From the IMG/VR virus record IMGVR_UViG_3300028558_000016, positions 372,001-436,000 of that record: DNA of 64,000 nt, one strand, 5' to 3'. The translations under genes and the position numbers were made by a program. The notes under the pieces were generated by a model that saw nothing but the letters and a program-made list of their open reading frames with translations, was not told the DNA's origin and made no database searches. This document shows, piece by piece, positions 12,615 to 50,545 of this stretch; the stretch's first letter is position 1; every line of letters starts with the position of its first letter.

Positions 12615-13283
12615 TTGAAGCATATTTCTCCATACTATCCGTTCGACGAGAACACATACAAGGATTTTTTTGAAAAAGAATATACCTGTCAGCTTGGAGC
12701 GGTCACGTTCGACGAGGCTAAAGTTATTTTCAATGGATTCAGATTGGTTCCAAAGAAGCTAATAAAGAAATTAATAAACATCATAGAGTTTGATCCGTCT
12801 CTTGGATCATCAAAAAAGTTTTATCCTAACCATGGAAGGTGGGAAGACAACTTCAGCACCATGTTTCTAAATAGAAGCGTTATAGACCTTGAACCAATGG
12901 AATCTGTTCATTTAATAATACATGAAATTGGTCATGCATTGGATCATAGACTTGGCGACATAACTAAAACACCAGATTGGTTGAACTTAAGCGGTTGGAC
13001 GTTAGACCCTCCAGGAATTAGTCAGGTTCAAAAAACAGATAAGAATTTCATTCATGGTGGAGAATATAGCAGATTGAAAATACAAGAAAAAGGAATGTAT
13101 TCTGTTTCAGATTGGTGGTACAAGGAAAATGCAAACTTCGTCAGATGGTATGCAAAAAGAAACCCACAGGAAGACTTTTGTGAGTCGTTCGCATATCTTG
13201 TAATGGAAGAAATTAACAGATTCAAAGGTTGTGAGGACAAGGCAAAGTTCATCAAGGACAATGTTTTGGTATACGGAAATTAA
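12615..13283 (+). CDS. zinc metallopeptidase-like protein
   Basis: HEIGH zincin motif and YAKRNPQEDFCES. Confidence 0.7.
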   Translation: MKHISPYYPFDENTYKDFFEKEYTCQLGAVTFDEAKVIFNGFRLVPKKLIKKLINIIEFDPSLGSSKKFYPNHGRWEDNFSTMFLNRSVIDLEPMESVHLIIHEIGHALDHRLGDITKTPDWLNLSGWTLDPPGISQVQKTDKNFIHGGEYSRLKIQEKGMYSVSDWWYKENANFVRWYAKRNPQEDFCESFAYLVMEEINRFKGCEDKAKFIKDNVLVYGN

Positions 13284-13293
13284 TATATAGAAT

Positions 13294-14010
13294 ATGAAAA
13301 ACTTCGACGAATTCTCAAACAGCATAAGGATCAATGAATCCGAAATCAAATTCTTAAATGAAGATGAAACAGAGCTTAATCAGCTTGGAATAGAACTTAC
13401 CAATTACATGGAAGATCAAGGAATTAAGTTTCCTGCATTCGACATTAAAAATGGAGTTCTTACATTAGATATGGCTGGAGAAGAGATTCACATAAAACCA
13501 GAACGTCAGGAATATAGCACTGGACATGGAACTCATCCAGGTTACGTTGTTTCAATGAAGCACAATCCCGATGAAAAGGTTGAAGACATTTTTGGATGGT
13601 TAGCAAGACACGTTTCTGCGTACCAACACGGTGAAGGAGAATATCATCACGAGACTTGGGTTGAAAAAATGAGAGACAAATTTGCAAGTCAGGCTGGAAT
13701 GGATGAAGGAATAGGATTGCTTCCAGATGAAGGACCATTCAAAGGAAAAACACCTGCAGAAAGAGTAAAGAACTATGCCAAGACATTGAACAAGAATAAG
13801 GTTGACAGAAAGGATGCAGAAGATTTTAATACTCTTTTGGGAATGATTGCTAAAAAAGATTCTGCAGCACAGGATTTCTTTTGGAATTTAGACACTTCGG
13901 TTAGGGATACTTTTGCGTCCGCTTATATTAATAGAGCAGATGGTAAGATCCTTGATATGGATGCCAAGAAAGAACTTTCTTCTTTATTAAAAGTAAGTAT
14001 TTCAAAATAA
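13294..14010 (+). CDS. hypothetical protein (possible internal virion protein)
   Basis: MKNFDEF...INES...LNE; ATATATAG upstream. Confidence 0.6.
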   Translation: MKNFDEFSNSIRINESEIKFLNEDETELNQLGIELTNYMEDQGIKFPAFDIKNGVLTLDMAGEEIHIKPERQEYSTGHGTHPGYVVSMKHNPDEKVEDIFGWLARHVSAYQHGEGEYHHETWVEKMRDKFASQAGMDEGIGLLPDEGPFKGKTPAERVKNYAKTLNKNKVDRKDAEDFNTLLGMIAKKDSAAQDFFWNLDTSVRDTFASAYINRADGKILDMDAKKELSSLLKVSISK

Positions 14011-14080
14011 ATTTTTTAGTTTCAAATATAGTGCCTATATTTGCATTGTAAATAAAACTGAAACAAAGAAAGATATATAG
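14008..14080 (+). promoter_or_regulatory. conserved operon promoter block
   Basis: TTTTTTAGTTTCAAATATAGTGCCTATATTTG...GAAACAAA..GATATATA. Confidence 0.65.
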
Positions 14081-14186
14081 AATAGAAGTAGAGATTGTGA
14101 CGCTACCCTTTGACAAATGATTAAGTAGAGTACGGGGTTTAATCTGAAAAAGCAAACCAATCGAAACTTCAAACATAATAACGAAC

Positions 14187-14276
14187 ATGAGATTTAATAA
14201 TAATAATCAGCAACAGTATCAACAGAATAATTATTCTGGTTGCGTGTTATTATTTTCTCCTGTCTCTGTTGATTGA
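14187..14276 (+). CDS. attenuator leader peptide, Asn/Gln/Tyr-rich (29 aa)
   Basis: MRFNNNNQQQYQQNNYSGCVLLFSPVSVD*. Confidence 0.85.
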   Translation: MRFNNNNQQQYQQNNYSGCVLLFSPVSVD

Positions 14277-14337
14277 CAGTTAAGATTTTAAGAGAATAAC
14301 ACGCAACCCGAACCGAAACGTTCGGGTTTTTTATTTT
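14238..14337 (+). terminator. attenuator: antiterminator and intrinsic terminator
   Basis: GGTTGCGTGTTATT(14238-51)/AATAACACGCAACC(14295-308), 14 bp, overlaps terminator AACCCGAAC-CGAAAC-GTTCGGGTT-TTTT. Confidence 0.85.
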
Positions 14338-14354
14338 CAAAAAAATCAAAAGTC

Positions 14355-14591
14355 ATGAAAACACCTCAGTGGTATAAACGAAAAATCAAGGAGGTCAAGA
14401 AACAGAAAAGAGAATTGACCTCTACAGAAATAGGCACGTTCTTCAATGGAGTAACCCTCACTAACAAGAGGAGGAAAGAAATGAAGGAAGATCTTAAGAA
14501 AGAAAAAAGATCTTACAAGCGTGCAGAAAAACAGGATCTCAAAAAGTCTATAGACGAAGAGATCCAAGATTGGAAAAGGAAGAAGCATTAA
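14355..14591 (+). CDS. small basic hypothetical protein
   Basis: ORF track, K/R-rich. Confidence 0.6.
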   Translation: MKTPQWYKRKIKEVKKQKRELTSTEIGTFFNGVTLTNKRRKEMKEDLKKEKRSYKRAEKQDLKKSIDEEIQDWKRKKH

Positions 14592-14604
14592 GCTTCTTCC
14601 ACAA

Positions 14605-14691
14605 GGGTAAGTTGCCGTAGTGGCCGAACGGTCCAGACTGTTAATCTGGTGAGAGCAATCTCCGTCGTGGGTTCGAATCCCACCTCGCCCT
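14605..14691 (+). tRNA. tRNA-Asn(GTT), long variable arm
   Basis: CCAGA-CTGTTAA-TCTGG; variable arm GAGAGCAATCTC. Confidence 0.8.
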
Positions 14692-14698
14692 CAACTTT

Positions 14699-14771
14699 TG
14701 GAGATTAGCTCAGTTGGTAGAGCTGCTGGTTGTTAGCCAGATGGTCGCGGGTTCGATCCCTGCATCTCCAG
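14699..14771 (+). tRNA. tRNA-Asn(GTT)
   Basis: CTGG-TTGTTAG-CCAG; TGGAGAT/ATCTCCA; G73. Confidence 0.85.
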
Positions 14772-14776
14772 CAAAT

Positions 14777-14848
14777 GCGCAAATAGCTCAGCGGTAGAGC
14801 AACCGGCTGTTAACCGGTAGGTCGCAGGTTCGATCCCTGCTTTGCGCG
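14777..14848 (+). tRNA. tRNA-Asn(GTT)
   Basis: ACCGG-CTGTTAA-CCGGT; GCGCAAA/TTTGCGC; G73. Confidence 0.92.
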
Positions 14849-14862
14849 CAAAAATAAAAGTA

Positions 14863-15111
14863 ATGGAAACAAAAACATTTGGTGAATGGTTAGAATTTCT
14901 GCCATCAGAACAATATCAAAGATTATCTTATGACGATAAGATGATTGCAACTATGAAATTGTTATTTGAGAAGGGTGAAAGAAACCCAAGTGCAATCACA
15001 GCAAAACTGTGGTACTTGGGATTCAAGGAAGGAAGATTCACTGACATAAGAAAACTTGCTGAGCATCAATTCAAATTGTACTCACAAGCACAAGCAGAGA
15101 AAGTAAGATAA
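14863..15111 (+). CDS. hypothetical protein
   Basis: METKTFGEWL..., start moved downstream of the tRNA. Confidence 0.6.
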   Translation: METKTFGEWLEFLPSEQYQRLSYDDKMIATMKLLFEKGERNPSAITAKLWYLGFKEGRFTDIRKLAEHQFKLYSQAQAEKVR

Positions 15112-15115
15112 AAAT

Positions 15116-15188
15116 TGTCCTGTGGTGTAACTGGCAACACGTGTGATTTTGGCTCATAAGAGTGCAGGTTCGAGCCCTGCCGGGACAA
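15116..15188 (+). tRNA. tRNA-Gln(TTG)
   Basis: TGTGA-TTTTGGC-TCATA; TGTCCTG/CGGGACA. Confidence 0.88.
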
Positions 15189-15208
15189 CAGTTGAAATGG
15201 AAATATAT

Positions 15209-15292
15209 TGGGGATCGCCGGAGTTGGAGAGCCGGGACAGTCTGTAAAACTGTTGACTTCGGTCTGAGTGGGTTCGAATCCCATGTCCCCAA
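15209..15292 (+). tRNA. tRNA-Tyr(GTA)
   Basis: ACAGT-CTGTAAA-ACTGT; long variable arm. Confidence 0.88.
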
Positions 15293-15315
15293 CAGTTCTT
15301 TGAAAATAAATTTAT

Positions 15316-15430
15316 GGGGAAGTAGCTCAGTTGGCAGAGCAATAGAAAAAAGCGTATTCTGCCCAAGAATATTTACAGCAACACAAAAGTAAATCTGTGT
15401 GCGGCCGTTCGAATCGGTCCTTCCCCACCA
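15316..15430 (+). ncRNA. tRNA scaffold with a large insert replacing the anticodon loop
   Basis: GGGGAAG/CTTCCCC+ACCA, intact D and T arms; insert contains GTATTCTG...GAATATTTACAGCAA. Confidence 0.7.
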
Positions 15431-15431
15431 T

Positions 15432-15505
15432 GGGACATTCCATACTAATTGGTAAGTCACTCGGTTGTAACCCGAGAAATGGGGGTTCGAGTCCCTCATG
15501 TCCCA
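15432..15505 (+). tRNA. tRNA-Tyr(GTA), short variable loop
   Basis: CTCGG-TTGTAAC-CCGAG; GGGACAT/ATGTCCC; irregular D region. Confidence 0.75.
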
Positions 15506-15506
15506 C

Positions 15507-15590
15507 TGTACAGTATGCAAATTGGCGAAGCGAACAGATTTTGGATCTGTTGGAGTAATCCCGCTGCAGGTTCGAGCCCTGCCTGTATAA
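15507..15590 (+). tRNA. tRNA-Gln(TTG), long variable arm
   Basis: ACAGA-TTTTGGA-TCTGT; TGTACAG/CTGTATA. Confidence 0.78.
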
Positions 15591-15604
15591 CTAAAATTAA
15601 AAAC

Positions 15605-16669
15605 ATGGAACAATTTCCACATAACGAAGAAGTAGACTTTAATAAAAAGTTGAATGTAAAATTTGGAATAGATCCAACTGCAGATAGATTGCATTTGGGA
15701 CATTTGATACCTTTGCGATTTGCGAAGAAGATGTTAGACAATGGACATAACCTTGACATAGTGTTAGGAACGTTCACTGCGCAGCTTGGAGATCCTTCTG
15801 GAAAAGATTCAATGAGACCTATATTGGACTCTGAAACTACTAAAGACAATGCAATTGCATTATTGCCTATCATCAGAAGGATTTTAAAGAAAGATTTTAA
15901 TCTTCATTTCAATCATGAATGGTTCAAAAGAATGAATGCGATTGATATGATCAACATTCTTTCTAAGTTTACAGCAAATCAATTGTTGTCGAGAGACTCT
16001 TTTCAAAAAAGAATTTCAAATGAAGATGGAATTGGTATGCATGAATTAACTGTTCCTATTTTGCAAGGATTTGATTCTGTTCATTTGAAAACAGATCTCG
16101 AAATAGGAGGCAACGATCAATTGTTTAACTTTAAAATAACAAGAGATCTGCAAAGAGCATTTAATCAAAAGCCGGAGATTTGCATGTTGATGCCAATAAT
16201 CAATGGAACTGATGGGAGAAAAATGAGCAAGACGTTTAAGAATTGCATTTTTCTCGATGACAGTCCCGTAGATGTTTTTGGGAAAACGATGTCCATATCT
16301 GATGAGTTGATGAAAGAATGGTTCATGGTTTTTATGGATGAATCAATAGGTCATCCAATGGAAGCAAAGAAAAAACTCGCATTTCAAATAACAAAAGAAG
16401 TGTGGGACGAAGATAATGCTAAAATTGCATTGGAACATTTTGAAAGAGTAATACAAAAGAAGAATGTACCGGTAGAAATTAAGGACATTAAAGACACAGA
16501 TATTTTAAAAGTCATTATGGAATTACGTAAATGTTCTGCCACAGAAGCAAGAAGATTATTGTCGCAAGGAGCAGTTAAAGTCAATGATGAAAAAGCATTA
16601 GAAGAAAAGACCTTATCATCTGGAGACATTGTAAAGGTTGGTAAGCTGAACTTTGCTAAGATAATGTAA
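15605..16669 (+). CDS. tyrS: tyrosyl-tRNA synthetase
   Basis: GIDPTADRLHLGH, GGNDQLFN, KMSKT, C-terminal S4 domain. Confidence 0.95.
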   Translation: MEQFPHNEEVDFNKKLNVKFGIDPTADRLHLGHLIPLRFAKKMLDNGHNLDIVLGTFTAQLGDPSGKDSMRPILDSETTKDNAIALLPIIRRILKKDFNLHFNHEWFKRMNAIDMINILSKFTANQLLSRDSFQKRISNEDGIGMHELTVPILQGFDSVHLKTDLEIGGNDQLFNFKITRDLQRAFNQKPEICMLMPIINGTDGRKMSKTFKNCIFLDDSPVDVFGKTMSISDELMKEWFMVFMDESIGHPMEAKKKLAFQITKEVWDEDNAKIALEHFERVIQKKNVPVEIKDIKDTDILKVIMELRKCSATEARRLLSQGAVKVNDEKALEEKTLSSGDIVKVGKLNFAKIM

Positions 16670-16689
16670 AAAGAATTTTGTATATTTAC

Positions 16690-16762
16690 TGTCTCGTAGC
16701 GCAACTGGCAGAGCGCCTGATTCTGGATCAGGAGGTTGGAGGTTCGAGCCCTCCCGAGACAA
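16690..16762 (+). tRNA. tRNA-Gln(CTG)
   Basis: CCTGA-TTCTGGA-TCAGG; TGTCTCG/CGAGACA. Confidence 0.92.
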
Positions 16763-16781
16763 CAATTAAAACATAAATAAT

Positions 16782-18341
16782 ATGTCAAGAAAAGTAAGAG
16801 TAAGATTTGCCCCGTCACCGACAGGGCCACTTCACATGGGTGGCGTAAGAACCGCCTTGTATAATTATCTCTTTGCTAAAAAGCACGGAGGTGATTTCAT
16901 TTTAAGAATAGAAGATACAGACAAAGACAGATTTGTTCCTGGCGCAGAAGCTTACATCATTGAAGCTTTGAATTGGTGTGGAATAACTCCTAACGAAGGA
17001 ATAGATGGAAATTCTGTTCTTGATACATACAAGCAATCAAAAAGAAATGAGGCTGGAATATACAATCCTTATGTTGCAAAATTAATTGCAGAAGGAAATG
17101 CATATTACGCATTTGATACTAAAGAAGATCTTGACGCATTGAGAACTTCTGTTTCTGAAAAAAGAAAAGCAGGATTAAAAGTAAGAGAATTCGCTTATGG
17201 TGTTTTCACAAGAGAATTATTGAACAACAGCTTGAACATGACTGCCGATGAATTGAAAGCAAGATTGGATGCTGGAATTCCTTATGTCATTCGTTTGAAG
17301 ATGCCTAAGGAAGTTGAAATTAAATTCGTTGATTTGATCAGAGGTGCTGTCACTGTAAAAAGTCACACCATCGATGATAAGGTTATATTCAAGAGCGATG
17401 GACTTCCAACATACCATTTGGCAAATGTTGTTGACGATCACTTGATGGACATTTCTCACGTCATTAGAGGTGAGGAGTGGTTGCCATCGGCACCGTTGCA
17501 CGTCATGCTATACAAGATGTTAGGTTGGGAAGATACCATGCCTGAGTTTGCACACCTTCCTTTGATCATGGGACCAAGCGGTAAATTGAGCAAGAGAGAT
17601 GGAGATACATTGGGATTTCCTGTATATCCTTTAAAGTATACAGATCCAAAAACATCTGAGACATCGAGCGGTTACCGTGAGAATGGTTTCTTGCCAAGTG
17701 CATTCAATAACATGGTTGCATTTCTTGGTTGGAATCCAGGTGGCACCGATGAGGTATTCACAATGGATGAAATGATCGATAAATTCTCTTTGGATAGAGT
17801 AGGAAAATCAGGAGCTAAATTCGATTTGAAGAAGGCTAATTGGTTCAATCACCAACACATGATGAAGTCTGATAATGATGACTTGGCAAAATTATGGATC
17901 AGCAATGGAGGATTATACAATGGAGCCATGGGTGTTTGGTCTACTGATGCGACAAAACAACGTGTTGATTCATTTGAATATGTTTCAAAGGTTTGTGGAT
18001 TGCTTAAAGAGAAGGTTTCTAACATCAATGATTTTTGGAATTCTGGAAAATATTTCTTTATTGCGCCTGAGCCAAGTCTTGGAACAGAACATTCTTCGTT
18101 CTTGGCAGAAGTAATTGCAAACATAACTAAGGATGAAGTGTTCAATCACGATTCTTTAAGAGCTGTGTTTGATGCTTCAGTTAAGGCAACCGGTGTTGAC
18201 GCAAGAGAGGCTGGAATGGTTTTAAGGATTGCTGTAACAGGAATGAAAGTTGGTCCACCTTTATTTGATGCAATGGAATTGATAGGTAAAAATGAATCAA
18301 TAAACAGAATAGCATCTAACGTGGTAGTCAATCATGAGTAA
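16782..18341 (+). CDS. gltX: glutamyl-tRNA synthetase
   Basis: RFAPSPTGPLHMGG, RIEDTD, HVIRGEEW, KLSKR. Confidence 0.96.
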   Translation: MSRKVRVRFAPSPTGPLHMGGVRTALYNYLFAKKHGGDFILRIEDTDKDRFVPGAEAYIIEALNWCGITPNEGIDGNSVLDTYKQSKRNEAGIYNPYVAKLIAEGNAYYAFDTKEDLDALRTSVSEKRKAGLKVREFAYGVFTRELLNNSLNMTADELKARLDAGIPYVIRLKMPKEVEIKFVDLIRGAVTVKSHTIDDKVIFKSDGLPTYHLANVVDDHLMDISHVIRGEEWLPSAPLHVMLYKMLGWEDTMPEFAHLPLIMGPSGKLSKRDGDTLGFPVYPLKYTDPKTSETSSGYRENGFLPSAFNNMVAFLGWNPGGTDEVFTMDEMIDKFSLDRVGKSGAKFDLKKANWFNHQHMMKSDNDDLAKLWISNGGLYNGAMGVWSTDATKQRVDSFEYVSKVCGLLKEKVSNINDFWNSGKYFFIAPEPSLGTEHSSFLAEVIANITKDEVFNHDSLRAVFDASVKATGVDAREAGMVLRIAVTGMKVGPPLFDAMELIGKNESINRIASNVVVNHE

Positions 18342-19398
18342 TATGCCAATAGGAATCCAAGCAATGGGTCCAGCCGAAGTAATAACGGAAATGTTTCTTC
18401 GTCCTGGATCCATTTCTGCTTATAGAGAGCAGATGGATCTGCTTGATAAAAACAAGGAACATATTTCTGTTCACGATGGATTTTCTATAATAACTTTCTG
18501 GGAACCTGCAACGAAGGCTTTCAATGCCGGCTGGAAGATGAGAGTTGTTTATGGCGAAGTAAAAGAAAAGAAATATTTTGTAAAAGATAATTGGAAAAAC
18601 AAAACAGTTTATTCTGGTGCAAGGCCTGAATGCGAAAAATACGTTCAGGGAAATAACACATATCAATTAAATTATTCTCGTTTGACAATCGAAATTAATT
18701 CAACTCTCGATGATAAGTTGGATGAATTAAAAAAGATTATTTCTGACTCAACAAAGCCAGATGAGAACGAATTGCGTTTTGCAAAGGCTACATCTAATTG
18801 GATCAAGGGTCCTGTCATGGGTTGGTTGAATGATAACAAGCTTGATTTCACCACTCGTTCTAAACCATCTCATCATAAATCATTAGTCACTGGAAATCTT
18901 TTCGACTATGAAAAATATTCTGCCATTGATGAAGAGAAGTGGTGGCCTAAAGATTCTCCTGATGCAAAACTTTATTTGCCTCTTCCTAAAGACGAATATC
19001 CTTACACAGTCGTGTATTCTGAAGAGGAGAGTAATTTTCCAATAAAATCTGAACATTTAAAAGAATTAATAAGCTTGGTTGAATTTACAGATCTTATTAG
19101 TTTCTCTACTGCTTCCAAAACTGTTTTTCCTGAGATGATCAAAAATCCAGATGAAAAACCTTGGGATATAATTCAAAGATTAAATTTGATGCAAAGCAAT
19201 GATGATGATGCCATCAAACAAATGGCCAAAGATGCTTTAGCAAAATATCCCGACAAGGTTGAAGAATATAGGAAAGGAAAGAAGGGAGTTCTCAGCCTGT
19301 TCATGGGCGAAGTAATGAAAGCCGGTAAAGGAAAAGTAAATCCGCAAATGGCTTCAGAAATAGTAAAAAATCTTTTGGAAGAAAAGGAGGGAGCATAA
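18334..19398 (+). CDS. protein with C-terminal GatB/YqeY domain
   Basis: VEEYRKGKKGVLSLFMGEVMKAGKGKVNP. Confidence 0.8.
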   Translation: MSNMPIGIQAMGPAEVITEMFLRPGSISAYREQMDLLDKNKEHISVHDGFSIITFWEPATKAFNAGWKMRVVYGEVKEKKYFVKDNWKNKTVYSGARPECEKYVQGNNTYQLNYSRLTIEINSTLDDKLDELKKIISDSTKPDENELRFAKATSNWIKGPVMGWLNDNKLDFTTRSKPSHHKSLVTGNLFDYEKYSAIDEEKWWPKDSPDAKLYLPLPKDEYPYTVVYSEEESNFPIKSEHLKELISLVEFTDLISFSTASKTVFPEMIKNPDEKPWDIIQRLNLMQSNDDDAIKQMAKDALAKYPDKVEEYRKGKKGVLSLFMGEVMKAGKGKVNPQMASEIVKNLLEEKEGA

Positions 19399-19413
19399 CT
19401 GCTCCCACTTTCT
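19386..19413. terminator. hairpin between convergent genes
   Basis: GGGAGCA-TAAC-TGCTCCC followed by T-rich tail. Confidence 0.5.
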
Positions 19414-19601
19414 TATTTAACTGTAGATGTTGCAACAACTGTAGGAGTTGCAATCACTGAAGCAGCTTCAACTGCTTTACAAGTATCAACACACGCTTTC
19501 GTTGTGTCACAAACTTCATTAACAACTTCAACTTCCGTTTTAGGAGTTCCACATGCAGCAAACATCGTCGTTGCAATAATTAAAAGTACAATCTTTTTCA
19601 T
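19413..19601 (-). CDS. small lipoprotein
   Basis: MKKIVLLIIATTMFAAC lipobox. Confidence 0.7.
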   Translation of the reverse strand: MKKIVLLIIATTMFAACGTPKTEVEVVNEVCDTTKACVDTCKAVEAASVIATPTVVATSTVK

Positions 19602-19716
19602 AGATTTTGTTGGGTTTTTAGTTTAGTTCCATATTAAACCGGGTCACGGTCAGGCTATATATAAATCACTGAGAAGTTAGTTTCAATCGATATATACAGC
19701 ACCACAATCATTTCCA

Positions 19717-19914
19717 TTGAAGCCAAAATTTAAAATCGGACAAACCATTTATTACATGTATCTCAATTGGATATGCAAATCTAAAGTGAAAAATCATTAT
19801 GAAAAAGATGGGAAGATCTTTTATTCTGATGACAGAAATGATGAAATATTAGAAAAATTCGTATTTGATAATAAGCCCGAACTGATTGATTTTCATATAA
19901 ATAGAACAAAATAA
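19717..19914 (+). CDS. hypothetical protein
   Basis: ORF track (KFKIGQ start). Confidence 0.55.
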   Translation: MKPKFKIGQTIYYMYLNWICKSKVKNHYEKDGKIFYSDDRNDEILEKFVFDNKPELIDFHINRTK

Positions 19915-19919
19915 ATAAA

Positions 19920-19960
19920 TAATTTTTCTGGTTTAAAAATAAGTGCCTATATTTGTATTC
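19920..19960 (+). promoter_or_regulatory. conserved operon promoter block
   Basis: TTTTTCTGGTTTAAAAATAAGTGCCTATATTTG. Confidence 0.6.
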
Positions 19961-19978
19961 AAGTTGAAAATCTTTAAG

Positions 19979-20032
19979 GGTTGCATTCAGCATAACAAAT
20001 CATCTACAAAATGAAACCAAAAGCAATCTGAA
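19979..20032 (+). ncRNA. CAGCA-motif structured element, copy A
   Basis: GGTTGC-ATTCAGCATAACAAA...GCAATC-TGAA. Confidence 0.55.
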
Positions 20033-20087
20033 GAATTTCAATGAAACAAAAAAGAAAAAAGATATATAACATAAGATATTAAAAAAA

Positions 20088-20142
20088 GGATGCGTTCAGC
20101 ATAACAAACTTACAATTGAAAAGTAAACCAAGGCATCCTGAA
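20088..20142 (+). ncRNA. CAGCA-motif structured element, copy B
   Basis: GGATGC-GTTCAGCATAACAAA...GCATCC-TGAA. Confidence 0.55.
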
Positions 20143-20155
20143 AAATTTTAAAGAA

Positions 20156-20248
20156 ATGAAAAAAGTAAATAACATAATCCCGCAGTTTCAGTTTGTGGTG
20201 CCGTTTAGCGGTTCCAACGGGCGTGTTATGTACTTTGACGATTTGTAA
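20156..20248 (+). CDS. attenuator leader peptide, Pro/Phe/Val-rich (30 aa)
   Basis: MKKVNNIIPQFQFVVPFSGSNGRVMYFDDL*. Confidence 0.8.
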   Translation: MKKVNNIIPQFQFVVPFSGSNGRVMYFDDL

Positions 20249-20298
20249 AAGAAAACGTTAGACAACAGAAAGCCCGGTGGAAACATCGGGCTTTTTTT
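20218..20298 (+). terminator. attenuator: antiterminator and intrinsic terminator
   Basis: CGGGC(20218-22) can pair GCCCG in the 5' arm of AAAGCCCGGTG-GAAA-CATCGGGCTTT-TTTT. Confidence 0.8.
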
Positions 20299-41551: not shown

Positions 41552-41631
41552 TAAATTTTTTAGTTTCAGAAATAGTTCCTATATTTGCAGATATAAACAT
41601 TGAAACAATTTTAAAAAGAAAAGGTATATAG
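41552..41631 (+). promoter_or_regulatory. conserved operon promoter block
   Basis: TTTTTTAGTTTCAGAAATAGTTCCTATATTTG...GAAACAA...GGTATATAG. Confidence 0.65.
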
Positions 41632-41638
41632 TTTAGAA

Positions 41639-41745
41639 GATTGCTTACAGCAAAACAAAATGGTTAAAGAATCACCGAAAGGTGGTTTTTTCGGTTCGAT
41701 CCCGAAGCTCTGAGATTACATCAATGAGTTTTAAGGCAATCTGAA
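41639..41745 (+). ncRNA. CAGCA-motif element enclosing a tRNA-like core, copy C
   Basis: GATTGC-TTACAGCAAAACAAA...TGGTTAAAG...GGTTCGATCCC...GCAATC-TGAA. Confidence 0.55.
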
Positions 41746-41766: not shown

Positions 41767-41850
41767 ATGAAGAACAGGAATCACATACACAAGCATCAGA
41801 TATGGCATAGAGATATGTCGGGCTTGGGTGTTACCTGTACTTTGAAGTAA
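41767..41850 (+). CDS. attenuator leader peptide, His/Trp (27 aa)
   Basis: MKNRNHIHKHQIWHRDMSGLGVTCTLK*. Confidence 0.85.
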   Translation: MKNRNHIHKHQIWHRDMSGLGVTCTLK

Positions 41851-41906
41851 GTATTGGTTATTTACGAAAGTAAAACCTCAAGGCCTAAAACCTTGAGGTT
41901 TTTTTT
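41823..41906 (+). terminator. attenuator: antiterminator and intrinsic terminator
   Basis: CTTGGGTGTT can pair AACCTCAAG; terminator AAAACCTCAAGG-CCTAAAA-CCTTGAGGTTTT-TTTT. Confidence 0.82.
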
Positions 41907-42373: not shown

Positions 42374-42463
42374 GGTGCAGGTATCCAAGGGGTTGAAGGG
42401 ACCAGGCTGTGGACCTGGTTGAAGCGAAAGCTGAACACGCGAGTTCGAATCTCGTCTTGCACC
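42374..42463 (+). tRNA. tRNA-His(GTG), long variable arm
   Basis: G-1:C73; CCAGG-CTGTGGA-CCTGG; AGCGAAAGCT arm. Confidence 0.85.
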
Positions 42464-42468
42464 CACAT

Positions 42469-42543
42469 GTGGATTGTAGCTCAATGGTAGAGCGCTGGTT
42501 TGTGGAACCAGATATGCGGGTTCGATCCCCGTCTTTCCAACCA
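42469..42543 (+). tRNA. tRNA-His(GTG)
   Basis: CTGGT-TTGTGGA-ACCAG; G-1, A73; two U.U mismatches in the acceptor stem. Confidence 0.8.
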
Positions 42544-42552
42544 AAAGAAGCA

Positions 42553-43185
42553 ATGATGAAAGAGTTAAAGTTAGATAGCACGTACAAAGGAACGAGAATT
42601 CTTGTAGGAAACGAGAAGCGTGGAATGATCAATGACATGGTCATGATTTTATTGAATCAAGGCTTCACTGAGATTTCCATTCCGATCATTCAGTTGCAAG
42701 AAACATTTGCAGGAAAGGTTGGAGAAGAAAATAACAATCTAATGTTCAATTTTAAAGATCGTGGAGAAAGGAATGTTTGCTTGGCTCCTGAATACACAGC
42801 AGTGATTCAACAATTGGCAAAGACGAAATACAAACAAGAAAAGGACGTAAAGCTTTTCTATGTGCAAGAATGTTTTAGAGGAGAAAAGCCTCAAGCAGGA
42901 AGATACAGACAGTTTACTCAATTTGGAGTTGAAATTTTAAATCCAAAGAAAGAAACTATGGAAGGATTAAAAGAATTAGCCGTCAGCCTTTTGTCCGGTT
43001 ATGATTTCAAATTCAACGTCAACAGTGATGTGACGAGAGGTTTGGATTATTACAAGGACGGAAAAGGATTTGAGATCACATGCGATGAGCTTGGATCAAG
43101 CAAACAGATTTGTGGTGGAGGTTCTTATGAAGGTGGAATGGGTTTTGCAATTGGAATTGATAGGATATTAAAAACACAGTCATGA
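42553..43185 (+). CDS. hisS: minimal histidyl-tRNA synthetase (catalytic core only)
   Basis: LAPEYTA, FRGEKPQAGRYRQFTQFGVE, RGLDYY, GGGSY, GFAIGIDRI. Confidence 0.9.
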   Translation: MMKELKLDSTYKGTRILVGNEKRGMINDMVMILLNQGFTEISIPIIQLQETFAGKVGEENNNLMFNFKDRGERNVCLAPEYTAVIQQLAKTKYKQEKDVKLFYVQECFRGEKPQAGRYRQFTQFGVEILNPKKETMEGLKELAVSLLSGYDFKFNVNSDVTRGLDYYKDGKGFEITCDELGSSKQICGGGSYEGGMGFAIGIDRILKTQS

Positions 43186-43913
43186 AATATTTAGTAGGAA
43201 TACAGCCAACAGGAAAGATCCATATTGGAAACTATATGGGTTGCTTAGCAAAGGGGTTGAGATACCAGGAGCAGGGACACGAAGTAACGTTTCTCATTGC
43301 CAACTATCACAGCATGACGACAGACTCATACTCTGATGTGACTGAGAAGGAATTGAGAATGCTTGGATGCAAGAACATTGTGCACCAGACTCCGGCTTAC
43401 ACTGAATTGTTCTTCAAGCTTTGTTGCAAGATGAACCTTGGAGTTTTGCAGAAGATGCCTCAGTACAAGGATAAAAAGGAAAGTGTTGATTTCGATATGG
43501 GGATTCTTTTATATCCAGTTCTAATGGCAGCAGACATCATCATGAATGATCCTGATGTTGTGTTGGTTGGAAGAGACCAGGTTCCACACATGGAATTGAC
43601 GAACGATATTGCAAAAAGAGTTGGAGTAACAAAGAGGTTTGAATACGAGCTTGGGGATGTTGAAAAGGTGATGTCGTTAATTGATCCAACAATGAAGATG
43701 TCAAAGTCATCTGGCGAAGCTCACGTGCTTTACCTATTTGACGAGGATTACAGTAACAAATTGAAAAGAGCAAACATGAACGGAGAAGGACTCATTAATA
43801 TACAAAAGATAGGAGACTTCTTTGGAATAGAAAGAAACGATATGAATTCCATATACAAAGAAAATATAGCAATAAAACTGTCATCGGTGTTCGGCACCGT
43901 CCCGGTGACTTAA
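43182..43913 (+). CDS. trpS: compact tryptophanyl-tRNA synthetase
   Basis: GIQPTGKIHIGNY, YPVLMAADI, VGRDQ, KMSKS. Confidence 0.93.
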   Translation: MKYLVGIQPTGKIHIGNYMGCLAKGLRYQEQGHEVTFLIANYHSMTTDSYSDVTEKELRMLGCKNIVHQTPAYTELFFKLCCKMNLGVLQKMPQYKDKKESVDFDMGILLYPVLMAADIIMNDPDVVLVGRDQVPHMELTNDIAKRVGVTKRFEYELGDVEKVMSLIDPTMKMSKSSGEAHVLYLFDEDYSNKLKRANMNGEGLINIQKIGDFFGIERNDMNSIYKENIAIKLSSVFGTVPVT

Positions 43914-45115: not shown

Positions 45116-45190
45116 TAAATTTTTTAGTTTCAAATATAATACCTATATTTGTAAAAGATTAAGAAACAAAGAAAACCGCAAGGTATATAA
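45116..45190 (+). promoter_or_regulatory. conserved operon promoter block
   Basis: TTTTTTAGTTTCAAATATAATACCTATATTTG...GAAACAAA...GGTATATAAG. Confidence 0.65.
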
Positions 45191-45197
45191 GATACAA

Positions 45198-45281
45198 ATG
45201 ATGAATACAGTAAATATTACCCGAATTATTAGGATTAGACGCAGATCAGCGACTCGCCTGGGTAGTATTATTTTATCATGA
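45198..45281 (+). CDS. attenuator leader peptide, Ile/Arg-rich (27 aa)
   Basis: MMNTVNITRIIRIRRRSATRLGSIILS*. Confidence 0.85.
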   Translation: MMNTVNITRIIRIRRRSATRLGSIILS

Positions 45282-45345
45282 AAGTTTTAAGGATTTAGAA
45301 AACTATGAATGGAATAAGCCCAGGACGAAAGTTCTGGGCTTTTTT
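45257..45345 (+). terminator. attenuator: antiterminator and intrinsic terminator
   Basis: CCTGGGT(45257-63) can pair GCCCAGG(45318-24) of AAGCCCAGGAC-GAAA-GTTCTGGGCTT-TTTT. Confidence 0.85.
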
Positions 45346-45827: not shown

Positions 45828-45973
45828 ATGTCCTTAGCTCAGTGGTTAGAGTATTATGCTGATAAAAGGTTTTAGATCTTGTAATGGAAAAATATCACGG
45901 CTCATAACCGTGGTACCAAAACAAAAATTTAAAATGCACATAAGGGTCGGTGGTTCGAATCCATCAGGACATG
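45828..45973 (+). tRNA. tRNA (GAT) with about 73-nt insert carrying a nested CAT anticodon arm
   Basis: ATGTCCT/AGGACAT; TTATG-CTGATA[insert with CACGG-CTCATAA-CCGTG]A-CATAA. Confidence 0.65.
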
Positions 45974-45982
45974 CATAAAAAT

Positions 45983-46236: not shown

Positions 46237-46326
46237 GCCCGTGTAGCCGAGGAAGTTTTCTAAACTTTTATCCGTAATTGGAGCTGCGTCTCACGACTAA
46301 TGGGGGTTCGAATCCCTCCACGGGTA
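46237..46326 (+). ncRNA. D-arm-less rearranged tRNA-like RNA, anticodon TCT (Arg)
   Basis: GCCCGTG/CACGGGT; GAAGT-TTTCTAA-ACTTT right after the acceptor strand. Confidence 0.62.
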
Positions 46327-46341
46327 CTTAAAATTAAAGTT

Positions 46342-47505
46342 ATGAAAATTGATATTGATAAAATAAAACAGATCCCCAAAGAGATTTCGGAAGAATTTGG
46401 GATGTGCGTCTATGGACCAATCTCAGATGAGATTAAGGCATGGATGGAATTCCATGGTATGCAATCGCAAAACATGGGAAATTATACAAACATCTATACA
46501 GATAAAAACATTATTGATCTGTTCAATAAACCAGAACCATTTGAATACATCGATGGGTTCAGTCCAAACCTAAACAAGAATCTTCACATTGGACACTTCT
46601 CAAATTTAGTTCTTGCAAAGGCTTTCGTCTCTCTTGGAATAGCAAAGAAGACTGTGGCAATATTGGGAGACACGTTAGAAGGGGATGTTTCAAAGGAAGA
46701 TGCGTTGAACAACTACAATGAGATATGTGAGAAATTCTCATACCCCGTAGATAAGATGTTCATGGCTTCTGAAATGGAATCTGATTACAACCTCGTGGAT
46801 GGTGTTCATGAATATGAAGGAACCAAAGTGTTCTATCTTGATACGCCATTAGTTGGAATCAAAAGCGATGGGTCAACAACATATTTCTATCAGGACGTTG
46901 CATTGGCACAAAAATTAAATGCTCCAACATTATATCTTACAGGAAGCGAACAGAACGGACATTTCAACAGCTTAAAGGAAATGTTTCCTAAAATAAAGCA
47001 CATTGGACTTGGACTTGTAAAAGCAAAAGGAGGAAAGATGTCAAGCAGACTCGGAAATGTTATTTGGATGCAAGATGTCATCGATGAAATGATGAGCAAC
47101 TTTCAAGACGAAAAAGTGTGCTATAATGTTTTTGCAGGATTTATTTTGAAATCAACTCCTAAGTCTGAAAAGAACATAGACATATATCAATTGGACAATC
47201 CATTGAATTCACCTGGATTGTACTTAAGCTATACGTTAGCAAAACTAAAAAGCGCTGGAGTGAAATGTGAAGGAAAAACATTCACCTCTCAAGATCTTCA
47301 ATTCAAATACATGAAGGCCTTGAACTCTCTTTCTCCAAATATTTTGCTTGAAGGTTTAATTGATCATGCAAAGAAGATAAGCGGTTTATACATCACTCAC
47401 AAGATAAAAGATAATGCGGTGAACCAGTCCATGTTTGAAATATTGGGTTCAGATTTATTATTAGGAATGAGCCTCCTGGGTTTATTTGATGTTGACAAGG
47501 TTTAA
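46342..47505 (+). CDS. argS: compact arginyl-tRNA synthetase
   Basis: FSPNLNKNLHIGH, KSDGSTTYFYQDVA, EQNGHF, KMSSRLGN, YLSYTLAK. Confidence 0.9.
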   Translation: MKIDIDKIKQIPKEISEEFGMCVYGPISDEIKAWMEFHGMQSQNMGNYTNIYTDKNIIDLFNKPEPFEYIDGFSPNLNKNLHIGHFSNLVLAKAFVSLGIAKKTVAILGDTLEGDVSKEDALNNYNEICEKFSYPVDKMFMASEMESDYNLVDGVHEYEGTKVFYLDTPLVGIKSDGSTTYFYQDVALAQKLNAPTLYLTGSEQNGHFNSLKEMFPKIKHIGLGLVKAKGGKMSSRLGNVIWMQDVIDEMMSNFQDEKVCYNVFAGFILKSTPKSEKNIDIYQLDNPLNSPGLYLSYTLAKLKSAGVKCEGKTFTSQDLQFKYMKALNSLSPNILLEGLIDHAKKISGLYITHKIKDNAVNQSMFEILGSDLLLGMSLLGLFDVDKV

Positions 47506-50272: not shown

Positions 50273-50545
50273 ATGTTCTTTGACACGATACAAAATATTC
50301 TTCTCGCAAAGAGAAAGAGAAAAGAGTATGGATATACAGCAGTAGGAGAATTGCTTAGAAATGTTCATGGAACTGAAGCAAAAATAATAGATGTTATTTT
50401 TAATCCGGCTGGATCCATTATAAAATTTGCTTACGATGATGACATGTTCTATTATACAACAATAGAGAAGCTCCAGACAAAATATTTTAAGATGATTGAA
50501 TATTCTTCTGGTAGAATGTCAAATGAAGAATATGGAAATGAATAG
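50273..50545 (+). CDS. hypothetical protein
   Basis: ORF track. Confidence 0.55.
   Translation: MFFDTIQNILLAKRKRKEYGYTAVGELLRNVHGTEAKIIDVIFNPAGSIIKFAYDDDMFYYTTIEKLQTKYFKMIEYSSGRMSNEEYGNE

Follow-up and report, generated by a model that had tools for sequence, protein, structure and literature searches.

How the tRNA and tRNA-synthetase genes carried by phages are controlled is an open question, and it is raised by a locus in a 482-kb phage genome (IMG/VR record IMGVR_UViG_3300028558_000016), in which a mini-gene composed largely of Asn, Gln and Tyr codons lies in front of a set of Asn, Gln and Tyr tRNA genes. An earlier note on this locus proposed that the mini-gene is the leader of an attenuator that responds to Asn, Gln and Tyr. 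To determine whether this proposal holds, we analyzed the 64,000-nt stretch that contains the locus (positions 372,001 to 436,000 of the record; hereafter the window). Based on sequence evidence alone, we find that the observation is confirmed and that the interpretation is supported, with refinements.

A biased leader ORF and a terminator precede the Asn/Gln/Tyr tRNA genes

We first examined the region upstream of the tRNA genes, which contains the following features.

14012-14043 (+): promoter-like element of Bacteroidota type, with a -7 box TAnnTTTG at 14036-14043 and a T-rich upstream part
14072-14080 (+): conserved GATATATAG motif in the 5' UTR, function unknown
14187-14276 (+): leader ORF of 29 aa, from ATG 14187-14189 to the stop codon TGA 14274-14276
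14196-14234 (+): regulatory run of 13 codons (codons 4-16), comprising Asn AAT x6, Gln CAG x3 and CAA x2, and Tyr TAT x2
14199-14214 (+): region 1, which pairs with region 2 (14239-14254)
14234-14256 (+): region 2, the 5' arm of the antiterminator
14290-14312 (+): region 3, the 3' arm of the antiterminator, which overlaps 8 of the 9 nt of the terminator's 5' arm
14305-14337 (+): intrinsic terminator, with a 9-bp stem (14305-14313 with 14320-14328), a 6-nt loop and a T run

The earlier note had given only the first 16 residues of the leader, whereas the ORF encodes 29 aa. To evaluate whether a run of 13 consecutive Asn, Gln or Tyr codons could arise by chance, we compared it with the long ORFs of the window, in which N, Q and Y together make up 12.1% of residues. 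The binomial tail for 12 of 12 is 1e-11, or about 2e-10 after allowing for window positions. Furthermore, among all 510 ATG-initiated ORFs of 15-45 aa in six frames of the window, this ORF ranks first for both two-amino-acid and three-amino-acid composition. The ORF ends 29 nt before the terminator, whose stem contains 5 G-C pairs and which is one of about nine strong terminators that a strict scan found on the + strand of the window; four of those terminators follow such leaders. The segment 14180-14345 folds far better than dinucleotide shuffles (z = -5.0, 0 of 200). In contrast, the remainder of the 137-nt 5' UTR does not fold better than shuffles (z = -0.6). The promoter function of the upstream element is inferred from the consensus only. 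No Shine-Dalgarno sequence is present, which is typical of Bacteroidota, but translation of the leader is unproven.

We next identified the genes downstream of the terminator.

14355-14591 (+): first ORF after the terminator, 78 aa, very basic, no family match
14605-14849 (+): three tRNA-Asn (GTT), the first of which is 88 nt with a long variable arm
15116-15591 (+): tRNA-Gln(TTG), tRNA-Tyr(GTA), an unresolved tRNA-like stretch, a second tRNA with a GTA anticodon (15434-15503, Rfam only), and tRNA-Gln(TTG)
15605-16669 (+): tyrosyl-tRNA synthetase (TyrRS)
16690-16763 (+): tRNA-Gln(CTG)
16782-18341 (+): bacterial-type glutamyl-tRNA synthetase (GluRS; gltX_bact)
18334-19398 (+): 354-aa protein with a C-terminal GatB/YqeY tRNA-binding tail domain
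19389-19406 (no strand given): hairpin at the end of the operon

Using ARAGORN, we found Asn(GTT) x3, Gln(TTG) x2, Gln(CTG) x1 and Tyr(GTA) x1. A further, weaker Rfam tRNA hit at 15434-15503 has an anticodon that we read as GTA, and the count of two tRNA-Tyr genes given in the earlier note therefore holds only if this weaker call is included. The codons of the regulatory run match the downstream anticodons GTT, CTG, TTG and GTA. TyrRS was identified by TIGR00234 (291.6 bits against a cut-off of 113.8) and by Pfam, with its start ATG at 15605 chosen by eye after the preceding tRNA, and the GluRS was identified by TIGR00464 (423.5 bits against a cut-off of 290). The last 120 residues of the 354-aa protein are the GatB/YqeY tail domain, while its N-terminal 230 aa are unassigned. 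The unit contains tRNA-Gln but no tRNA-Glu, which suggests, by inference only, that the GluRS-type enzyme serves tRNA-Gln.

The leader region contains alternative 1:2, 2:3 and 3:4 pairings

To determine whether the leader could control the terminator, we searched the region for inverted repeats and found three nested complementarities. Region 1, within the Asn/Gln codons, pairs with 14239-14254 (16 nt, 81% complementary), a pairing absent from the earlier note; its local fold is -14.5 kcal/mol and its duplex energy is -11.3 kcal/mol. Region 2 pairs with region 3 (23 nt, 87% complementary; -23.9 kcal/mol). The core of this repeat is the perfect 14-bp complement of 14238-14251 with 14295-14308, which the earlier note described as taking the base of the terminator stem. 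However, the longer repeat reaches 14312, across one 1x1 mismatch, and so covers 8 of the 9 nt of the terminator's 5' arm rather than only its base. The third pairing is the terminator itself (-13.0 kcal/mol as a duplex; -12.8 to -13.4 kcal/mol as a hairpin).

We then asked whether competition for the terminator is shared by related units, which are described below. When each of seven units was folded without the terminator's 3' arm, the 5' arm paired in every case with a G-rich segment of the leader ORF immediately after the regulatory codons. Because the paralogues are too diverged to align for a formal covariation test, we evaluated complementarity unit by unit against 500 shuffles. The best upstream partner of the terminator's 5' arm lies just 3' of the regulatory codons in all seven units, and its score was reached by 0, 0, 2, 11, 35, 40 and 47 shuffles, which means that it beat the shuffles in 453 to 500 cases, depending on the unit. 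The arm-only value for the Asn/Gln/Tyr unit is among the weak ones because most of its antiterminator lies upstream of the terminator.

To assess the effect of a translating ribosome, we performed a simple simulation in which a 30-nt footprint was forced to be unpaired. With the A site on most of the regulatory codons, the terminator's 5' arm was 56-90% paired, whereas pairing fell to 5-45% once the ribosome covered region 2. In the Asn/Gln/Tyr unit the drop already begins at codon 13, and a ribosome stalled on the last 3-4 regulatory codons would cover region 2, which suggests that only stalls at about codons 4-12 should give read-through. A ribosome at the stop codon sits in the 33-nt loop between regions 2 and 3 rather than on either region, so that the block of 2:3 pairing at this position is a steric assumption, without which the simulated effect disappears at the stop codon. 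Furthermore, in the unconstrained minimum-free-energy fold, a shortened antiterminator of 10-12 bp and a terminator of 6-8 bp coexist. Equilibrium folding therefore does not exclude termination, and the switch has to be kinetic (co-transcriptional) rather than thermodynamic.

The coexistence of both helices, together with the heavy processing of tRNA precursors, leaves room for the alternative that translation of the leader controls something other than intrinsic termination, such as Rho access, RNase processing of the tRNA precursor or transcript stability. We consider this unlikely, because every unit has a canonical G+C-rich hairpin with a T run and a region 2 that competes for that hairpin's 5' arm, and the competing segment would have no role in these alternatives.

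Leader composition matches the downstream tRNAs across five units of the genome

We next investigated whether the architecture recurs. Near-identical copies of the 32-nt promoter-like motif lie at about 41556-41587 and 45120-45151, and a variant lies at 19948. An exact-pattern scan of IMG/VR returned only the contig under study, four times, the fourth copy preceding a Leu/Ser unit outside the window (locus L024). Behind each copy is a short ORF and then a strong terminator. With the Asn/Gln/Tyr unit designated Att1, the other units are as follows.

20156-20296 (+): Att2, with a 30-aa leader (20156-20248) rich in P, F and V and a terminator at 20267-20296, followed by tRNA Pro, Phe, Pro, Phe, Val, Val and a ProRS
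41767-41902 (+): Att3, with a 27-aa leader (41767-41850) containing His x4 and Trp x1 and a terminator at 41872-41902, followed by tRNA Trp, His, His and HisRS-like and TrpRS-like ORFs
45198-45341 (+): Att4, with a 27-aa leader (45198-45281) containing Ile and Arg as CGA, AGG, AGA and CGC and a terminator at 45316-45341, followed by tRNA Ile x2 (the second copy with a 73-nt intron), Arg ACG, CCT and TCG (TCT at 50545), and an ArgRS-like ORF
L024 8307-8378: leader of the Leu/Ser unit, alternating Leu and Ser and using TTG, TTA, CTA, TCA, AGT, TCG and TCC, followed by tRNA Leu TAG, TAA, CAA, GAG and Ser GGA, TGA, GCT, CGA

The GATATATAG motif is present in all four window units and in the orthologous unit L018 described below. 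To test the correspondence between leaders and tRNAs, we scored each leader against each tRNA set. Every leader scored highest against its own set and every set against its own leader, such that the true assignment is the unique best of the 120 possible for the five units of this genome; per-unit probabilities range from 1e-10 to 1e-2. The correspondence extends to isoacceptors, as seven of the eight tRNAs that follow the Leu/Ser leader have their cognate codon in it, and the four kinds of Arg codon in the Att4 leader are followed by tRNA-Arg ACG, CCT, TCG and TCT. In contrast, the lone tRNAs of the window (Cys 1929, CTA suppressor 2278, Val-GAC 25192, Arg-TCT 50545 and Met 52987) follow ordinary ORFs, and none has a leader and terminator of its own.

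Related units occur in other phage contigs and in a cultured phage

To identify relatives, we searched IMG/VR with the GluRS, which found 22 loci, and with the unusual first tRNA of Att1, which found 19. We then listed every terminator followed by tRNAs, together with the short ORFs before it, which yielded the following units (L numbers denote individual loci).

L018 (373-kb contig): N, Q and Y in a different order; Asn x2, Tyr x2, Gln x3 follow
L015 and L119: M, N, L, T, V, I, R; Ile, Asn, Arg, Leu, Val, Thr, Met follow
L112 and L121, unit 1: Y, N, W; Tyr, Asn, Trp follow
L112 and L121, unit 2: R, L, H, Q, E, P; Pro, Glu, Gln, His, Leu, Leu, Arg follow
L117 and L120: T, P, N, G, D, A; Pro, Asn, Asp or Gly, Thr, Ala follow
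L118: Leu-rich; four tRNA-Leu follow
L124, unit 1: N, T, H, I, K; Asn, His, Thr, Lys, Ile follow
L124, unit 2: L, C; Leu, Leu, Cys, Cys follow

In these loci composition is conserved while sequence is not, and between L015 and L119 one C-G to U-A exchange preserves pairing in the 2:3 helix outside the terminator. Other searches were less informative. A search of metagenome contigs with the GluRS returned 80 loci at about 50% identity that appear to be bacterial GluRS genes, none with a tRNA array, and searches of viral contigs with TrpRS, ProRS and TyrRS returned only the contig under study plus one relative without tRNAs. An 18-mer of the odd tRNA-Asn gave 104 hits in bacterial genomes, mostly in genomes unrelated to Bacteroidota and apparently chance matches, and none of these loci has three or more tRNAs.

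A megablast of 13000-20000 against INPHARED gave a single match, a 77-nt tRNA hit to Cellulophaga phages, which led us to the cultured Cellulophaga phage phi4:1 (NC_021788; host Cellulophaga baltica). Its tRNA array is split into three groups, each preceded by a leader. The first leader is an unannotated 22-aa ORF (record 87065-87133) followed by a terminator, in which residues 4-14 are Q, R, L, H, L, Q, E, L, E, Q, P, and tRNA Pro, Glu, Gln, His, Leu, Leu, Arg follow. The -7 box ends 4 nt before the ATG of this leader, so its mRNA may be leaderless. The second is an unannotated 32-aa ORF (record 89771-89869) rich in N, Y, S, W and F, followed by a terminator and tRNA Tyr, Ser, Asn, Trp, Phe. 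The third is the annotated hypothetical protein gp075, rich in K, I, V, T, G, D, A and R, followed by a hairpin with a T run and tRNA Ala, Lys, Ile, Gly, Met, Asp, Thr, Val, Arg.

This recurrence bears on two alternatives. The first is that the terminator is constitutive, acting as an insulator or an upstream operon end, and that the N/Q/Y ORF is an untranslated low-complexity accident. Although AAT- and CAA-rich runs arise easily in 36% G+C DNA and no translation data exist, the same coincidence would have to occur in five units of this genome and in at least ten units of other phages, each time with the right amino acids. In addition, a promoter-like motif lies upstream of the leader, not downstream of the terminator, and in most units the first tRNA starts 6-19 nt after the terminator, leaving no room for another promoter. 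We therefore regard this explanation as very improbable. The second alternative is that the short ORFs encode functional small peptides whose link to tRNAs is incidental. The residues after the codon run do share a loose S-G...V pattern, but this stretch coincides with the G-rich RNA segment that pairs with the terminator arm, and between Att1 and L018 the order of residues changes while the composition is kept, which makes this the least likely of the readings we considered.

A model for control of the tRNA operon

Taken together, these results suggest that the locus is a ribosome-mediated transcription attenuator that gates a phage operon of tRNA-Asn, tRNA-Gln and tRNA-Tyr genes, TyrRS, a GluRS-type enzyme and a GatB-tail protein, a reading to which we assign a probability of about 0.85 in the absence of expression or ribosome data. 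In the proposed sequence of events, transcription starts at the Bacteroidota-type promoter near 14040, and a ribosome translates the leader while RNA polymerase moves toward the terminator. If charged tRNA-Asn, tRNA-Gln or tRNA-Tyr is scarce, the ribosome would stall within about codons 4-12, leaving region 2 free to pair with region 3, which would prevent the terminator from forming and allow polymerase to read into the tRNA and synthetase genes. If decoding is fast, the ribosome would run over region 2 to the stop codon, regions 3 and 4 would form the terminator, and transcription would end at about 14337. With no ribosome at all, region 1 can pair with region 2; however, because the 2:3 helix is much stronger than 1:2, an untranslated transcript may read through by default. 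Translation of the leader, its coupling to transcription, the direction of the switch and the physiological signal are inferred. The net effect would be an OR gate over three amino acids, which makes the supply of phage tRNAs and charging enzymes follow demand and gives negative feedback once the phage tRNAs accumulate.

A refinement of this model, which does not contradict it, is that the signal is loss of tRNA molecules rather than amino-acid starvation, through host shut-off, a codon-usage mismatch or tRNA-cleaving host defences, such that the leader calls up replacement tRNAs. Consistent with this possibility, the controlled genes are tRNAs and charging enzymes rather than biosynthetic genes, the leaders sample individual isoacceptor codons, an RNA ligase gene lies inside the Leu/Ser unit, and tRNA-targeting immunity with phage tRNAs as a counter-measure is documented (PMC12409363). 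However, stalling cannot tell an uncharged tRNA from an absent one, no anticodon nuclease or host is identified here, and the link to the RNA ligase is circumstantial, so this refinement remains tentative. More speculatively, phage tRNA arrays, at least in phages of Bacteroidota, may be organized as self-tuning modules, each headed by a leader that mirrors, codon by codon, the tRNAs behind it, through which the phage would measure decoding capacity for each codon in the infected cell and replace only the tRNAs that are missing. On this reading, which is possible but no more than that, the leaders are the sensor arm of a counter-defence and host-range device that has been overlooked in published phage genomes such as phi4:1.

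These units suggest that expression of phage tRNAs and synthetases is demand-driven and is measured by the ribosome itself on a test peptide whose codons mirror the array. The finding would extend leader-peptide attenuation to tRNA genes, to viruses and to a phylum in which it is little studied. It also provides a sequence-only way to predict which tRNAs belong to one transcription unit, and it reassigns hypothetical mini-ORFs such as phi4:1 gp075.

Comparison with known systems

Arrays of phage tRNAs, sometimes with tRNA-repair enzymes, are present in cultured phages such as T4, T5, vibriophages and Cellulophaga phages. We found no report of leader-peptide control of such arrays in a full-text literature search, although many subscription journals were outside its reach, and in phi4:1 the leaders are unannotated or listed as a hypothetical protein. 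T-box riboswitches before synthetase genes in Firmicutes serve the same regulatory goal, a choice between terminator and antiterminator that is set by the charging state of a specific tRNA and controls translation-supply genes, but they bind uncharged tRNA directly and use no ribosome or ORF. No T-box match was found in the window, or in 14000-14400 at E up to 10.

Leader-peptide attenuation that controls a synthetase gene in response to its own charged tRNA is predicted for the His leader before hisS paralogues in bacilli (PMC2965389), and the pheM leader of the E. coli pheST operon is probably a comparable case. Those are single-amino-acid, single-synthetase, chromosomal systems with no tRNA genes in the controlled unit.

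The classical leader-peptide attenuators of amino-acid operons in Proteobacteria (trpL, hisL, pheL and leuL, and the multivalent thrL and ilvL) share with the locus described here a short ORF with clustered regulatory codons, an intrinsic terminator and mutually exclusive 1:2, 2:3 and 3:4 helices, and the sensing of several amino acids by one leader is known from thr and ilv (modelled in PMC1183508). There is no sequence or covariance-model similarity, as only tRNA hits in the window reach the Rfam gathering score, and permissive thresholds returned only sub-threshold, terminator-driven hits (Trp_leader scores 17.6 against 41 and Thr_leader 16.2 against 55). The main departure from the classical attenuators is that the controlled genes are tRNA genes and aminoacyl-tRNA synthetases rather than biosynthetic enzymes; in addition, the element is in a phage genome, and the leaders sample up to seven amino acids and individual isoacceptor codons.

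Unusual tRNA and synthetase genes

The tRNA-related features of interest within the window are:
2278-2351, tRNA with anticodon CTA
14605-14692, first tRNA after the predicted attenuator, anticodon GTT (Asn)
15316-15432, tRNA-like sequence with a large internal insertion
45828-45974, second tRNA-Ile(GAT)
42409-43913 and 46300-47505, HisRS-like, TrpRS-like and ArgRS-like ORFs

The tRNA at 14605-14692 has an Asn anticodon but is 88 nt long with a long variable arm, which is a shape normally limited to Leu, Ser and Tyr tRNAs. The same 18-mer occurs in 19 IMG/VR contigs, and in Cellulophaga phage phi4:1 the matching gene is annotated tRNA-OTHER/pseudo. The second tRNA-Ile(GAT) is interrupted by a 73-nt intron in the anticodon loop; it is an Rfam tRNA hit, and ARAGORN finds it only in intron mode. 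The sequence at 15316-15432 features an acceptor and D-arm at one end and a T-arm and CCACCA at the other, but only a low-confidence ARAGORN intron-mode call was obtained. The tRNA with anticodon CTA is of the amber suppressor type and is labeled Pyl by ARAGORN. None of the five leaders of this genome ends in TAG, and the leader of L018, the locus from the 373-kb relative, ends in TAG followed directly by TAA. The HisRS-like (258 aa or fewer), TrpRS-like (243 aa) and ArgRS-like (401 aa) ORFs are short or score below the NCBIfam cut-offs. They may be truncated, split or highly diverged synthetases.

Sequence elements upstream of the leaders

A conserved GATATATAG or GGTATATAG motif was observed at the following positions:
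14072-14080, Asn/Gln/Tyr unit (Att1)
about 20066, Pro/Phe/Val unit (Att2)
about 41626, His/Trp unit (Att3)
about 45186, Ile/Arg unit (Att4)
L018 about 4790

The motif lies about 30-40 nt downstream of the -7 box in Att1, Att3 and Att4 and farther downstream in Att2. It is also present in L018, which lacks the -7 box. This motif could be a second, phage-specific promoter element. The 5' UTR of Att3 holds an extra terminator-like hairpin and a tRNA T-arm-like sequence upstream of the leader ORF (41668-41715), and the UTR of Att2 holds two copies of a roughly 58-nt hairpin element, each ending in CTGAA (19980-20150). In L018, two T-arm-like segments lie upstream of the orthologous N/Q/Y leader within a structured-looking G+C-rich stretch (4500-4760), where ARAGORN calls neither a tRNA nor a tmRNA.

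A fifth unit and a cultured phage

Outside the window, the same 482-kb genome encodes a fifth unit with an alternating Leu/Ser leader (locus L024, 8307-12303). Downstream of the Leu/Ser tRNAs lie a class I synthetase, an RNA ligase (PF09414) and a Sir2-family protein.

We also found that cultured Cellulophaga phage phi4:1 has three leader-plus-terminator units before its three tRNA groups (locus L129, from NC_021788):
L129 3066-3187 (record about 87065-87186)
L129 3990-4165 (record about 87989-88164)
L129 5772-5920 (record about 89771-89919)

The -7 box ends 4 nt before the ATG of the first phi4:1 leader, which suggests a leaderless mRNA. In the phi4:1 record, two of the leaders are unannotated and one is listed as hypothetical protein gp075.
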